In this document: piece after piece, positions 5,773 to 62,139 of the stretch
How the letters are laid out: each line of letters opens with the position of its first letter
Numbering within the stretch: position 1 is the stretch's first letter
Origin: Octopus sinensis
Taxonomy: Eukaryota
NCBI RefSeq assembly: GCF_006345805.1
Contig: NC_043026.1
Coordinates: 1 to 64,000, forward strand
Reading direction: 5' to 3'
Length of the DNA: 64,000 nucleotides
Notes under the pieces: generated by a model
Database searches by the model: none
Seen by the model: only the letters and a program-made list of their open reading frames with translations
Told to the model about the DNA's origin: nothing
Translations under genes and position numbers: made by a program

Positions 5773-6103
5773 ATGTCCCTGTTTCCTTTTACCCGTCCTG
5801 CTGCAATGGAAGTGCTTCTGTTAGCTCTTACAACCATCCAGGCTGTTACGTCAGATCAAGAATTTGATGAAGCTTACTACAAACGTTTGAGACCTGGTTA
5901 TTCCTATGATTATATTGGGACCTCTCCAACAGAACAATTCCCCATCGTATCAAGTCTACCGGAATGTGCCTTCTATGCTCTAAACAGCCAATCAGAATTC
6001 TTTACTTACAACAAAGTCAGCCGTGTTTGTAAGAATTACTCACCGAAAGCTATAGTGAAAGCCGTCAGCACGAGTGACACCAACGAGATTTCCTTCTATA
6101 GAA
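5773..6103 (+). CDS. Gene A exon 1: signal peptide + PAN/apple-like module
   Basis: ATG 5773; MSLFPFTRPAAMEVLLLALTTIQAVTS...ECAFYA...[14 protein letters not shown]...SFYR; donor AGAA|gtaagt, phase 1. Confidence 0.8.
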
Positions 6104-6189
6104 GTAAGTGAATCTTCTTTATTATTACTGTTGACTTATTTTTACATCGTTCGGTCAGATCAAAGTACCAGTATTATTATTATTATTAT

Positions 6190-56381: not shown

Positions 56382-59300
56382 ATTTTAAAGTAGATCCTTC
56401 CTCCAATTAATGCGAATATGAACTCTAAGACACAGAATCTAATATGCTGCATCACATTCCCAAATTGCAAAGAGAATTCTATTTGGCAAAACCAACAATT
56501 CCCTTTGCCAATGAGCAACGATCCACAGACAGCACATCCGACAAAACGAATTACGTAAGATTTCGCTGAGCAAACGTCTAGATATATGCGGAAACAGCAG
56601 ATTCAACATCTTCGCTTTCTACAAATGACCATAGGAGAATGAGACGGCCGAAAGACAACGAAACTATATTTTACAGGAAAATTTCTATCAAAAGTAAACG
56701 TGTGAAAATATGTTTATATAAAATTTTTAAAATATTATAAAAAACTTTACTTTCGCAGAAGAAACCAAACCAGATTATTACTGGATATATTTTTATTATT
56801 AATGATGTTCTCGTTACTGTTACTAAAATAACTGGAAGAATTCACTTAAACAACCGACACGCATACACACACACAAACACACACACACACACACACACAG
56901 ACACACACACACACAAACACACACACACACATACACACTCTCACGCATACGGTTAGACACAAACACAAACATACATTTAAATGCCTTTCCAAATAATTCC
57001 ATAGATTCTGTTTTCCAAATAATTCCATAGATTCTTTTTCCTTCAGCTCGCCAACAGAACAACCGACCAAACATTTTGTCAGTCACACCATAACTAAAAG
57101 AAATTTAATTTCATTCATAATAATTTTTGATTCCTTTGACCTGTCATCGAATTCACCCATCCCAGAAGAACACTTCTTTCTCTCTTTCAGAAAGCCAGAA
57201 GACACGCCTGCTTATACGCATATACATACATACGCGTACATAGACACATGCATACACACAGGAATATATACATATATCTATAGAATCAAAATGACAAAGG
57301 GCATCTCAGATATCTCCCCTTCAATCACTCTCATTCCCAAACCCAAGAAAACAAATTCACTCCCGGTTCTTTTCCACTCACTTCTTTATAAAAGTTATAA
57401 ATTTCCGATAAGAAATCATTCATGATGAATCCCTGAGAGGGCCGAAAGCCCTAAATAAATGGATTTTTATTCAAATCCTCTCCTGACTACCGTCTCTTAT
57501 TAACATATGAAATCTATACACCACTTCAAAATTTTACACACACTCATCTCCACTACATCAATCGTCACCATCACAACAAACACACCAACACCACCGCCAC
57601 AACCAACAACAATACTGAACACTTCTTATTGAACGGACATATAGGTATCTAATCTTCTCAGTGAAGTGTGACTGTTCGCATTCATGTGAGACAGTTAGTT
57701 TAGTTCCGTGTGGGTGAAAACATAATATCATAAATGGGAAGTGTTGTTCTCACTGCGTATGTTATTGACCTTTATATAGAGTTGTCGTAGCTGCAGATAC
57801 TGGTGACAGAAGCGAGCAGTGCTGCTATCAGTGAACAGTTCGAAACCTTTCGCTCCGGTTTCCCTTGTAGAGACAGTGGTGATATTGTCATTTGTAGGAA
57901 ATCTGGATTGATATCTAGAGACAGTGCCTACCTGCGTGGTAATTCTGGAAGCAATAGGTAATTTTCCTTCTACTATAAACACAAGGTCTGAAATTTTGTA
58001 GGAAAGGGCTAGTTGATCATATGAACCCCACTGCTCAGCTACTACTTGTTTTACTGAGCCTGGAAGGAAAAAAAGGATAAGTCGGCTTCTGTAACATTTG
58101 AATGCAGTAAACAATATTGGCATTTGTAGGGGTCCTGACTTGACATCAAGAGACAGTGGTGACATCTGTGGAAAATTCTGAAAGTGGAATTTGCGGGTAT
58201 CCTTCATAAGTGGACGGTCATCCGAGGAGAGGACATTACTGGACAGTCATAGTGGACAGACCTGACAACGTCTCTCGTTACCCACGAATAGCAAAATCAA
58301 CCCAACTACCCACAACAAAGGTAAGAATACATTTGTGCGTACGCGTATGTGTGTGTGTGTGTGAGTCTGTGTGCATGTGTGTATGCATGTGCGCGAGCGC
58401 TAGCTCACTCACGGTCAAAAGATTGTGAATTCTGAATCGGGTGGTGCATTGAACCCTTCGACAAGATACTTCATTTTGACTCCACTCTATTGAAAATAAC
58501 TACAAGTGACAGCTGGAGAAGGGTCCACTATAACCCTTGGCAACCTGAATAAGCTCCGGCCTGGAGGCTTGAGTCAGACTTTATGATGTGTTTGTCTGGA
58601 GAAGGGAGCGACGATATTTCTTGCTGTTTAACACTTGGTCAGTAACGATTAAGCAGATCTAAGATCAAAGCCGTTTCGACCGTAGCCATCACACCATATA
58701 TTCAAAAATACGCTTGTTATGAATGCATTATCATGTTGTTATTTTCGTTCGTGTGTTTGTTTGTTTGTTGCTGTTAGCGACATCATTATGCGCCAGGTCA
58801 ATCCTGATCGAACAGTTCTTCAGTGAAAGATATTCCAGCCGTGACCATGCCATTCTTTTATTCAGATATTAGCGTTTTCTCCTTTCATTTCCCCTTATAA
58901 ATGTATCTCTTCCTTTATCTCCTTCCTTCTCTGTATTACTATCTATTTCTAGCTATCTCGTACGTCTTCTCTTCCCCTCTCTATTCTATGCTCTCCTCTC
59001 CTCAACTTCTCTCCTTATACCAGGATCGATTTCTCCCTATTTCTCCCTATTTCTATCTCTCTATCAATTACTCTTCTGTCTCTTTCTCTTTACCTCTCCC
59101 ACTTTTGAATTCTGTCTTCATCTCATCTCTCTCTAAATTTTCTCCCTCATCTTCTAACACACACACACACACACACACACACGCACGCACACATACACAT
59201 GCGTACACAAATATTTATAAGTATAGTCCTCTACTGATTCTAGAGCCAAGATGTTCCAGTTTCCTTCTACCATTCCAACCGTGACCACAGTGCTGCTATT

Positions 59301-62139
59301 AACCCTTACTACAATTCTGACCGTTGCCTCAAACCAGCAATTTTATACAGGCAGCTACAGATCTTTGGCTCCTGGGTATTCCTACCGTTACCTTCAGGAA
59401 CCTCCGACAGAACAATTCTTCTCCACTCGATGTCTACTGAAATGTGCCGCGATTTCTCTAAGCAGCCAATCGAAATTCTTCACTTACAACAATGTCAGCC
59501 GTGTTTGTAAGAATTACTCACCGAAAGATATTATGACAGTTGTCAGAACAAACGACCGCAACGAGATGTCCTTCTACAGAAGTAAGTGAATTATTATTAC
59601 TATTATTATTTTTTTCATTATCATCATCATTAATTCCGCCGAGGTAACTTTCTTTTTCATATGAATCGACTCTCTTCTGCGTGTATACAGATGATTTTTT
59701 ATATACCATCCTAGGCCATTTTCCTTTGCTTCGATACAATCCTGACAACAGATCAAACTTGTCCCACCCTTTCTCGAGCAAAGGAGAGAGGATTTATTTT
59801 ATCAGTTATAATCTCTGTCTGTAAAACAAACATCACGGTAGTCCAACAACAGAGGGAGAAGCAGTTTGTCAAGTTTTACCTTCCCCTCAAAGCAACACGG
59901 TGCTTTCAATCCAGCAGCCCTTCTTACAGCTTTGTAGTGTGTGAGTGCGTGAGAGAGTGGGGAGAGAGTGAGTATTGTAAACAATAAATAAAATAAACAT
60001 GAATTGGAAAAATCGTATAAATAAAAGGGTATCACTACAGATGTATACACTCCCGAATTTGTTGCTTCATGACATCCAGAAAAATGCATACTTTTAAAAA
60101 GAGGTTTCTAAAAATACTGCTTAGATGTTGTGGCTTCAGAGTATTTCGGGATTTATAAGAAAGAATTTTCCTGTGGGGTGGGAGAGAAGGATTTTGGAAA
60201 ATTGACACGATCTACTTTACTCCCTCATAACTTTCAGGAAGATGAGTATCTTTTAATGAACATTTATACAAATCCCCTTCAAACGCACAGATTACGATTG
60301 TAAAGAAATTTGTGGAGAAAATTTCTTCAAAGATTTTGCTATTTTTTTTTTAAACCACAGCCTTCGAAATGTTGGGGTGGGGATGAGGCATCTTTGTATG
60401 AAAAAGTTTTGTATACTCCTTTTTTACACCCTTCCCTCATCGTCCAACTCCGGACTTATTTGGGCAATTTTTTTTTTTGCACTTCAAAACAATGGTAAGA
60501 ACATTTTCGGTTGTTGTGATTTTGATGAAGTTTGAAACTGTTAGGTGGTGCGTTGTATCACTCTATATAGCAGGTGAACATCTTCATTTATTTGACATTT
60601 ATCAAGTGGACTACTCGTTTTCTTTTCTTCTAGTATACTTGTAAGTAAAAGCCAAAGTTCACGGTTCATGGTTAAAACTGACGGTTTCCTACTATATTGG
60701 TACAAACATACGTACCTACTTAGTTACTTACATACCTACTTATACACATACACACTTACTGTTTACTGCAATGATTTGGTTCACTAGATCGGTGAAAAAT
60801 TCTTTTAAAGTTGTTAATATTTTCAGTGGGGAAAGCGGCAAACTGGCGGAAACGTTAGCACGTCGGGTGAAATTCTTAGCGGTATTTCGTCTGCCGCTAC
60901 GTTCTGGGTTCAATTTCCGCCGAGGTCGACTTTGCCTTTCATCACTTTGAGGTCGATTAAATAAGTACCAGTTACGCACTGGGGTCGATATAATCGACTT
61001 AATCCGTTTGTCTATCCTTGTTTGTCCTCTCTGTATTTAGCCCCTTATGGGTAGTAAAGAAATAGGTATTTCGCCAGTTGACTCGTTCTGAGTTCAAATT
61101 CCGCCCAGGTCGACTTTGCCTTTCATCCACTCGGGGTCGATATATTAACTACCAGTTCAACACTGGGGTCGATGTAATCGATTCATGGCCTCCCCATAAT
61201 TGCTGCCCTATGTTTTCCAGAAACTTCTGTTCTGGCTACATGGAAATGATTGTGTAGTCCCCTGTTGAATTATGCTTTATCATGTCCATTTTGTATTTGT
61301 TCCTTTGTCTTACTTTTTTTCCGCTGCATTCAATACTCCATCATTCCCGACACTAGCAAGGTTTCCATTTGCTCTCCTCGCATACAGACAAACAGTGTCT
61401 GTACGTGGATGATGGGCTCCATGTATCTTTAGAAGCTTTCTCGTTTTCCTGTCCATCTCCTATACCTCCTCATCTGTTCAGTTCAGGATGCCAAGGCCAT
61501 ACCCAACTCTGAAAGTGCGCGCAAGTTCTTTGCCGAAATCATGTTACTGGCATTGAGTTTTGAAGCCAATATCATCATGACTACTATTACTACTACTACT
61601 ACTACTACTACTACTACTACTACTACTACTACTACTACTGTTGTGTTATTATTATCATTATTTCAGATACCCAATGGATTAAAACTTATGCCATATCAAT
61701 GGGAGCTCGTTCAAAAGTCTTTAAATCATTCATGAATATAGGAAGTCCTTCAACCTGGAATGTGGACAAATGCAGAGGTGTCTTTTGTCCCAACTTCTTC
61801 CGACATCCTATCCTTGATTTCTGGAAACATCTTCCAATTGAGGAGGTATGTATGCATACACATACACGCGCACACAAATGCATATTATTATTTTCCTAAT
61901 AACAGTAATACTGATAAACAAATATTTAGATCAATTCAGTTATGTGTGTCACATTTTTGACCTGTAAAAATTATTTATTGGGAAGGCGAAGCAGTGTTGT
62001 AAAGAATTCTATCCGCGGCAAACCGCTGTGAGATTCATGGCCTGCCCCAAATTGTTGCCCTTGTGGAAAAAGATTTGAAACCATTGTTATTAATTCTTTT
62101 TATAATAAGTTTTGCTGGAACTCCTAGAATCTTGCATGC
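56382..62139. repeat. Inverted segmental duplicate of ~26059-33300 (gene C 5' flank to intron 2)
   Basis: Collinear reverse-complement similarity across flank, exon 1, intron 1 repeats and exon 2, with several large indels. Confidence 0.9.
59251..61845 (+). CDS. Gene D (inverted paralogue of C): exons 59251-59581 and 61667-61845; remaining exons presumably beyond the window
   Basis: ATG 59251, AGAA|gtaagt, tttcag|ATACCCAATGG...GAGGAG|gtatgt; open and in phase; exon 1 differs from gene C at 9 of 331 nt. Confidence 0.85.

Follow-up and report, generated by a model that had tools for sequence, protein, structure and literature searches.

A lineage-expanded octopod gene array for predicted secreted proteins with a degenerate PAN module and a possibly fibrinogen-related C-terminal domain

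What do the short coding exons scattered through the first 64,000 nucleotides of Octopus sinensis contig NC_043026.1 (assembly GCF_006345805.1; this whole stretch is the window below) encode, and do they still make up working genes? A first-pass annotation made from the letters of the sequence had described a cluster of four genes for an unnamed family of secreted, PAN-like proteins, each hidden across small exons of matching length and phase. Our best explanation of the whole, to which we give a probability of about 0.6, is that the window carries part of an octopod array encoding secreted binding or recognition proteins in which a PAN module precedes a fibrinogen-like domain. Annotation gains a complete gene, a partial one, and two apparently dead copies in a family predicted in three Octopus species and in Argonauta.

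The window is AT-rich and full of microsatellites and transposon debris. Searching it by tblastn with 16 family members returned exactly 14 exon segments and no others: two at locus A (+), five at C (-), five at B (+), and two at D (+), in that order along the DNA. When protein C was the query, E-values ran from 1e-23 to 1e-70 for all but the 18-amino-acid exon 5 (1.8e-5 in C and 0.002 in B), and judged by this similarity the matches are far beyond chance. The span first proposed for the cluster, 5773-61845, proved exact, beginning with the ATG of locus A and ending with the final base of D exon 2.

Among the four loci, only C is demonstrably a complete gene. Its exons lie on the minus strand at 30036-30366 (331 nt, with the ATG, the predicted signal peptide, and the PAN-like module), 26352-26530 (179 nt, where the C-terminal domain begins), 22344-22507 (164 nt), 18861-19024 (164 nt, where family members vary most), and 18269-18324 (56 nt including the TAA stop). 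The introns, of phases 1, 0, 2, and 1, are all GT...AG, and the product reads through 297 amino acids without interruption, so that the five-exon structure first suggested for C was reproduced in lengths and phases alike. The hydrophobic N terminus suggested for it was also found, residues 4-28 being the sole hydrophobic stretch in the protein. Spliced protein C carries every Cys, Trp, and Pro residue that is invariant in the family, and it aligns end to end with octopod proteins of 293-297 amino acids with no gaps at the exon junctions. The start context of C, AGAGCCAAG-ATG (5' untranslated region and Kozak sequence), is the same in O. sinensis LOC118761735.

A homologue search with protein C returned 52 clusters at E<=1e-3, all of them octopod (Octopus sinensis, O. 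bimaculoides, O. vulgaris, and Argonauta hians) and carrying names such as "uncharacterized protein LOC..." or "hypothetical", with one member listed as "Apple domain-containing protein" in UniProt. A second search, from a more diverse alignment, brought up largely the octopod proteins already found, under names that told us nothing more. The best match is LOC118768578 (E 1.8e-156, 78% identity, 100% coverage), which together with LOC118768577, LOC118761735, and LOC118768580 forms a set of 293- to 297-residue proteins that resemble C end to end at 45-78% identity and share its invariant Cys and Trp residues, none of them being identical to it. Literature searches by six LOC numbers, on an apple/PAN expansion or its secretion in octopus, and on PAN combined with fibrinogen-related domains in molluscs turned up no account of the octopod family. 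The family is indeed unnamed, but it is not hidden: RefSeq pipelines already predict members with the same exon structure. LOC118761735 (contig VCDQ01005972; P0002) was exactly rebuilt from exons of 331, 179, 164, 161, and 56 nt in the same phases; it is the one annotated member whose exon structure was checked, and the gene model of the closest O. sinensis match (P0001) spans 243 kb. Clustering and expansion are equally evident beyond the window, since many members sit on one 15.1-Mb contig of O. sinensis, one 18.6-Mb contig of O. bimaculoides, and one 29.2-Mb contig of O. vulgaris. The window genes are further members of this already annotated, uncharacterized octopod family, which, its unnamed C-terminal domain aside, is an ordinary lineage-specific tandem expansion. 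On VCDQ01005972, another copy, of which exons 2-5 were seen (22741-27024, minus strand, of locus L001), faces the 3' end of LOC118761735 tail to tail at a distance of about 5 kb, in the same orientation as A and C in the window.

The proposal that all four loci share exons of 331, 179, 164, and 164 nt did not survive. Locus A retains exon 1 (5773-6103, +, 331 nt from the ATG to a phase-1 GTAAGT donor, encoding the predicted signal peptide and PAN-like module; 57% identity to C by tblastn, E 2e-32) and exon 2 (8600-8778, +, 179 nt with AG/GT boundaries), its last family exon; the two are 80% identical to O. sinensis LOC118768580. Neither tblastn nor sensitive blastn found any remnant of exons 3-5 in 8779-17400. 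The block of locus B that holds these exons, 46352-47984, has no counterpart in A, where an unrelated 2.6 kb at 8996-11562 stands instead, and A-B homology restarts downstream of that stretch. Locus A is a 3'-truncated relic from which exons 3-5 have been deleted.

Locus B is damaged at the other end. Its exon 1 remnant (41859-42116, +) has neither ATG nor signal peptide; homology to A, C, and D begins only about 80 nt into the coding sequence, past the signal-peptide part, and blastn similarity to A starts at 41859. The frame is then shifted by two 1-bp insertions near 41881 and 41902, which none of the other three copies has, the first creating an in-frame TGA. Exons 2 (45954-46132, 179 nt), 3 (46651-46814, 164 nt), and 4 (47372-47535, 164 nt), all on the plus strand, are open, and in exon 5 (47895-47962, +, 68 nt) TAT replaces the usual stop, which extends the frame by four codons; exons 2-5 keep good splice sites. 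We regard B as probably a 5'-damaged pseudogene. To set against this, the two insertions could in principle be assembly errors, an explanation that cannot hold for the missing 5' coding segment. Just beyond B, starting 23 bp past its stop codon, a 147-bp unit is repeated seven times (47985-49011, 96% matches). It has homology with the sequence flanking C on the 3' side, AATAAA included, and with single copies downstream of A (11563-11837), so the putative 3' untranslated and poly(A) region of B has been tandemly amplified.

Locus D has an intact exon 1 (59251-59581, +, 331 nt, boundaries verified), 95% identical to C at the protein level in tblastn, and an intact exon 2 (61667-61845, +, 179 nt). 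Similarity to C stops at 62139, and tblastn with the family found no exons 3-5 between exon 2 and the window end at 64000; D is apparently an intact gene that leaves the window after exon 2. With C complete, D partial, A a relic, and B a probable pseudogene, the picture of four like members has to be corrected, and this very inequality supports the birth-and-death evolution that had been suggested for them.

The arrangement of the copies points the same way. A direct duplication links the unit of A (5848-12672) to that of B (41859-50014) through patches of 87-95% identity in self-blastn. An inverted one links 26059-33304, the 5' half and upstream region of C, to 62139-56377 at 86-96% identity, the second arm (56377-62139) comprising the 5' half and upstream region of D. 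C and D thus stand head to head within the arms, with B in between. We considered an artefact of haplotype duplication for this pair and rejected it, because the arms are inverted and differ by 4-14%. The paralogues are also of different ages, with a synonymous divergence (dS) of 0.055 between C and D and about 0.46 between A and C.

Divergence changes along the genes as well. Measured against LOC118761735, exons 1-2 of C have a dS of 0.04-0.12, a value that rises to 0.58 for exon 3 and 1.1 for exon 4; between B and C, dS is 0.17 in exons 3-5 and 0.42 in exon 2. Exons 1-2 of C are nearest to LOC118768578 and LOC118768577, while exons 3-5 are nearest to another locus, LOC118768575, to which they are 83% identical; identity to LOC118768578 is about 90% in exons 1-2 and 61% in exons 3-5. 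Since both dS and the nearest relative differ from one part of the gene to the next, these genes are mosaics, produced either by conversion that homogenized the 5' halves or by exchange of old 3' cassettes. Across 19 full-length octopod paralogues, sequence entropy peaks at residues 211-280, and mean pairwise identity, which is 47% in the signal peptide and 55-64% over the other mature regions, drops to 41% in exon 4. We weighed positive selection as an explanation for the variability of exon 4 and did not adopt it, the ratio of nonsynonymous to synonymous divergence (dN/dS) between C and LOC118761735 being 0.42 there at a very high dS.

What kind of protein, then, does an intact member encode? 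Profile searches of protein C gave little: a Pfam scan found no family at all, even at E=10, and phmmer against Protein Data Bank (PDB) sequences gave a single chance match at E=1. The case for a PAN module comes from relatives and from structure. Eighteen of 50 aligned homologues from other taxa match Pfam PAN_1 where the N-terminal module of the octopod proteins aligns, and the family profile matches the apple domains of Toxoplasma MIC4 (TgMIC4) in the PDB. An AF2 model of protein C built on a deeper alignment (pLDDT 86.9) predicts an N-terminal module in which a helix at 62-71 is flanked by strands at 43-58 and 76-110 (pLDDT 80-94). Foldseek aligns this module with the N domain of HGF (probability 0.97-0.99, TM 0.60-0.61, root mean square deviation [rmsd] 3.2-3.5 Å) and also with leech antiplatelet protein and a PAN-bearing fungal copper oxidase (E 4e-4).

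The PAN/apple core is defined, in the account we drew on, by four to six conserved cysteines (PMC9249922), and here the octopod module falls short, with only C65 and C86 invariant, corresponding to the outer disulfide. Non-octopod homologues retain C-x3-C-x5-6-C-x11-C, a four-cysteine PAN core. Compared with PAN/apple domains proper (PF00024; HGF N, the plasma prekallikrein apple domains, and MIC4), the octopod module shares the helix-on-beta-sheet arrangement and the outer disulfide but lacks the inner one, having two conserved cysteines instead of four to six. By predicted fold and by descent, the module is a PAN, in degenerate form. The label "PAN-like" used in the first-pass annotation therefore fits the first 110 or so residues, and these only loosely, through the HGF N fold and one core disulfide; it does not describe the other two thirds of the protein, which form an unrecognized domain.

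That C-terminal domain, about 185 residues long and beta-rich, has two conserved cysteine pairs, C146/C151 and C239/C255. It is widespread: the family profile found 1126 representatives (counted at 50% clustering) with a cutoff of E<=1e-3 and still 658 when this was tightened to E<=1e-10, and most of the matches run through residues 112-294 or so. No Pfam family covers it in protein C or 50 homologues, and no relative was detected in the PDB at the sequence level. DUF7922 was tried as a Pfam model and rejected, as it passes its whole-protein cutoff only on an amphioxus protein with four copies of the domain, over a 32-residue motif, and gives nothing on a single copy at E<=10. Proteins of about 270-310 amino acids that pair PAN with this domain occur in Aplysia, Mytilus, Dreissena, Potamilus, and Babylonia. 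The domain is often present in several copies. In amphioxus, it occurs with ZP, EGF, and fn3 modules, the four-copy protein carrying its copies in tandem beside a ZP domain. Elsewhere, its partners are the sushi repeats of an SVEP1-like protein, crinoid F5/8C modules, and echinoderm D8C and TSP1 modules, and starfish and crinoid proteins combine it with D8C, TSP1, and sushi modules. Further occurrences come from a flatworm, from a hemichordate, and from bacterial-type proteins that carry TIG or FG-GAP repeats, one annotated as Myxococcota and another taken from a metagenome contig. These contexts are all extracellular.

The same evidence makes the secretion claimed for the family plausible. 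The hydrophobic segment of C is single and N-terminal and is followed by small residues (TVA/SNQ), as would suit a cleavable signal peptide; 12-15 of 19 paralogues keep the sequons at N88, N178, and N191, the cysteines are paired, and the partner modules of relatives are solely extracellular. We infer a secreted product.

The harder question is where the C-terminal domain comes from. In Foldseek, the C-terminal part of two models recovered only fibrinogen-like globes, namely those of ANGPTL6, ficolins, FGL1, MFAP4, and angiopoietin-2. A sequence bridge leads in the same direction. In P0093, P0084, and P0103, a canonical fibrinogen A subdomain ("C..I...G...G.Y.IDPD...P..VYCDMT.DGGGWT") is continuous with the C-terminal domain, and Fibrinogen_C scores 32 bits (cutoff 22) on such linking sequences over residues 1-61, including the first 20 or so residues of the C-terminal domain. 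A hidden Markov model of six linking units, aligned over GGGWT...W, matches FGL1, ANGPT2, FCN2, and FGG with E-values between 1e-7 and 1e-11. Under relaxed settings, hhalign places the two domains collinearly from the first W to the last strand in the expected register, which is not evidence on its own.

Against a fibrinogen-related origin stand several results. The structural matches are weak (E 0.02-0.3, TM 0.3-0.41, rmsd about 10 Å). The C-terminal domain scored a probability below 0.1% in hhalign, both against ficolin-2 and against an alignment of four fibrinogen-type sequences (those of ficolin-2, fibrinogen gamma, angiopoietin-2, and FGL1, confirmed to be nearly the same as chains in the PDB), and with HMMER it matched no fibrinogen-type PDB chain. 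Fibrinogen_C (PF00147) found nothing over the B and P subdomains in protein C or 50 homologues. The fibrinogen A subdomain with its disulfide is absent from the octopod and other molluscan proteins, where the PAN module occupies its position, and the sequence bridge reaches only the first strand and loop of the C-terminal domain. The hhalign, HMMER, and Foldseek scores speak for a rival reading, an independent fold unrelated to fibrinogen-type domains, with the GGGWT strand of the bacterial proteins marking a boundary shared by fusion and not by ancestry. We take that alternative seriously while judging it to fall short of even odds, for fibrinogen-type globes were the sole fold class recovered in two independent models, the low-stringency register is collinear over the whole domain, and the alignment of the bacterial bridge is unbroken over the junction. 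A very divergent fibrinogen-related origin of the C-terminal domain is the view to which we incline, as somewhat the better bet, and it is unproven.

Intelectins (X-type lectins) offer a parallel, as lectin domains in which the N-terminal "CDM..GGGWTLV" segment alone reveals, by sequence, a link with domains of the fibrinogen type. Intelectin structures lie outside the top 50 Foldseek matches of the octopod model, and no similarity in sequence extends past the GGGWT strand.

If these parts are put together, the window would be one section of a tandem and inverted array, large and expanded in this lineage, whose genes have five exons. An intact gene would yield a precursor of about 297 amino acids consisting of a signal peptide, a degenerate PAN module (C65-C86), and a beta-rich domain of about 185 residues, the last being a very divergent fibrinogen-related offshoot in which PAN has replaced the A subdomain. 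The mature proteins would act as soluble extracellular binding or recognition molecules, lectin-like or adhesin-like. Their conserved 5' half, exons 1-2, would provide a scaffold, and the end of exon 3 together with exon 4 would encode a variable surface facing the ligand, while the array itself would evolve through duplication, exchange between paralogues, and decay.

The model for such a role is the fibrinogen-related immune proteins. Ficolins, tachylectin-5, and gastropod FREPs (IgSF plus fibrinogen domain) have, like the octopod family, a signal peptide, an N-terminal partner, and a C-terminal globe. Both groups are multigene, with variability concentrated in the C-terminal third, and the two are tied by the weak likeness of fold and by the sequence bridge through the GGWTV strand. 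Unlike those proteins, the octopod ones have no A subdomain, no Fibrinogen_C match, and no significant profile-profile score, and ficolin-type calcium and acetyl-binding motifs were not identified in the octopod domain. By analogy with ficolin- and FREP-type proteins, the variable surface encoded by exon 4 may contact ligands.

Further points count against the reading as a whole. Protein C falls below the threshold of each PAN profile (PF00024, PF14295, PF08276, and PF08277). The case for transcription and splicing of C comes entirely from conservation and annotated orthologues. The variability of exon 4 may reflect simply old paralogous lineages, there being no sign of positive selection, and binding is suggested by analogy for a family in which no ligand, tissue, or phenotype is recorded for any member in any species. 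A bolder version of the fibrinogen-like reading is correspondingly more speculative, and we advance it only tentatively. It would make the C-terminal domain an ancient fibrinogen-related branch, ranging from Myxococcota to deuterostomes without a Pfam model or solved structure, that was recruited behind PAN; the octopod array, of at least about 25 genes with a homogenized 5' half and divergent exon 3/4 cassettes, would then supply a repertoire of soluble pattern-recognition lectins, encoded in the germ line and shuffled by cassette, comparable to gastropod FREPs.

A second explanation for the array is that it encodes structural proteins of matrix, mucus, or cuticle-like material, as in sucker lining, skin mucus, or egg coat, the copies serving dosage or tissue-specific variants. 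PAN modules are common in apical-matrix proteins, and the company kept by the C-terminal domain fits such a role, with four tandem copies in the amphioxus ZP protein and with D8C (uromodulin-like), TSP1, and sushi partners in starfish and crinoids, all typical architectures of matrix or coat proteins. The octopod proteins themselves are small two-domain monomers with no polymerizing module (ZP, vWD, or collagen), and dosage arrays are usually homogeneous, whereas exon 4 here diverges strongly between paralogues. We consider a matrix role unlikely, yet worth keeping in mind.

It could also be asked whether the local cluster is a decaying remnant with no functional locus among the four. Two of the loci are broken, D is visible to exon 2 only, and C and D, which show only 27 differences, have a dN/dS of about 1.0. 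C, however, keeps a 297-codon frame over five exons, with canonical splice sites and all the invariant Cys, Trp, and Pro residues; its dN/dS against the O. sinensis paralogue LOC118761735 is 0.55 over the full length and falls to 0.39 across the PAN module, and its start context is the one noted above in that gene. Wholesale decay is improbable on this evidence. Weakest of all is the idea of salivary or venom-gland effectors used on prey, which draws on the octopod-specific expansion of small, secreted, cysteine-paired proteins, a general pattern outlined for octopod salivary-gland novelties (PMC7656900), but has against it the presence of PAN plus C-terminal-domain relatives in nonvenomous bivalves and gastropods, the conserved copies elsewhere in octopus genomes, and the lack of any toxin-family similarity in Pfam or PDB searches.

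For an unnamed and unstudied family, the main value of these genes lies in a widespread extracellular C-terminal domain and in their mosaic variation. Two thirds of the protein consist of a domain that has no Pfam family or solved structure and that many marine invertebrates combine with modules of the ZP, sushi, discoidin, TSP1, and PAN types; bacterial sequences seem to bridge it to the lectin domains of fibrinogen type. If both the fibrinogen link and the binding function are true, the family would be a candidate for diversified innate recognition in cephalopods, and the domain would merit a family entry of its own. To our knowledge, little is known of the immune recognition repertoire of cephalopods.

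Other features of the window surround these loci. On the strand opposite to C, within its intron 3, lies the longest nonrepetitive open reading frame (ORF) of the window (20727-21869, +, 380 amino acids); it has no Pfam match and is probably a transposon protein. Intron 1 of A (6344-8443, -) and intron 1 of B (42716-45101, -) contain remnants of non-LTR retrotransposons, several of whose frames are broken, the one in A with RVT_1 at E 5e-28 (7751-8443) and a weak zf-RVT match (6589-6999). About 1-1.5 kb upstream of D and C, an ORF is conserved across the arms of the inverted duplication (57728-58207, -, 159 amino acids, and 31819-32073, +, 84 amino acids); it has no Pfam match and may be either a piece of a transposon or an exon lying upstream.

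At 51686-52152 and 36174-36920, a fragment of a GIY-YIG endonuclease-like ORF (Pfam E 7e-5) may be Penelope-like, and the sequence next to it has an inverted copy between C and B (51695-51188 against 36174-36691, 89% identity). Between B and D, a unit of about 550 bp is present in about 3.5 copies at 98% identity (53502-55415). Very long (TATG)n and (ATATGT)n microsatellites occupy 37408-39750, 33568-34782, and 1508-2782, the largest being 2.3 kb with 586 copies, and these blocks produce spurious ORFs of up to 840 amino acids together with strong spikes in GC skew.

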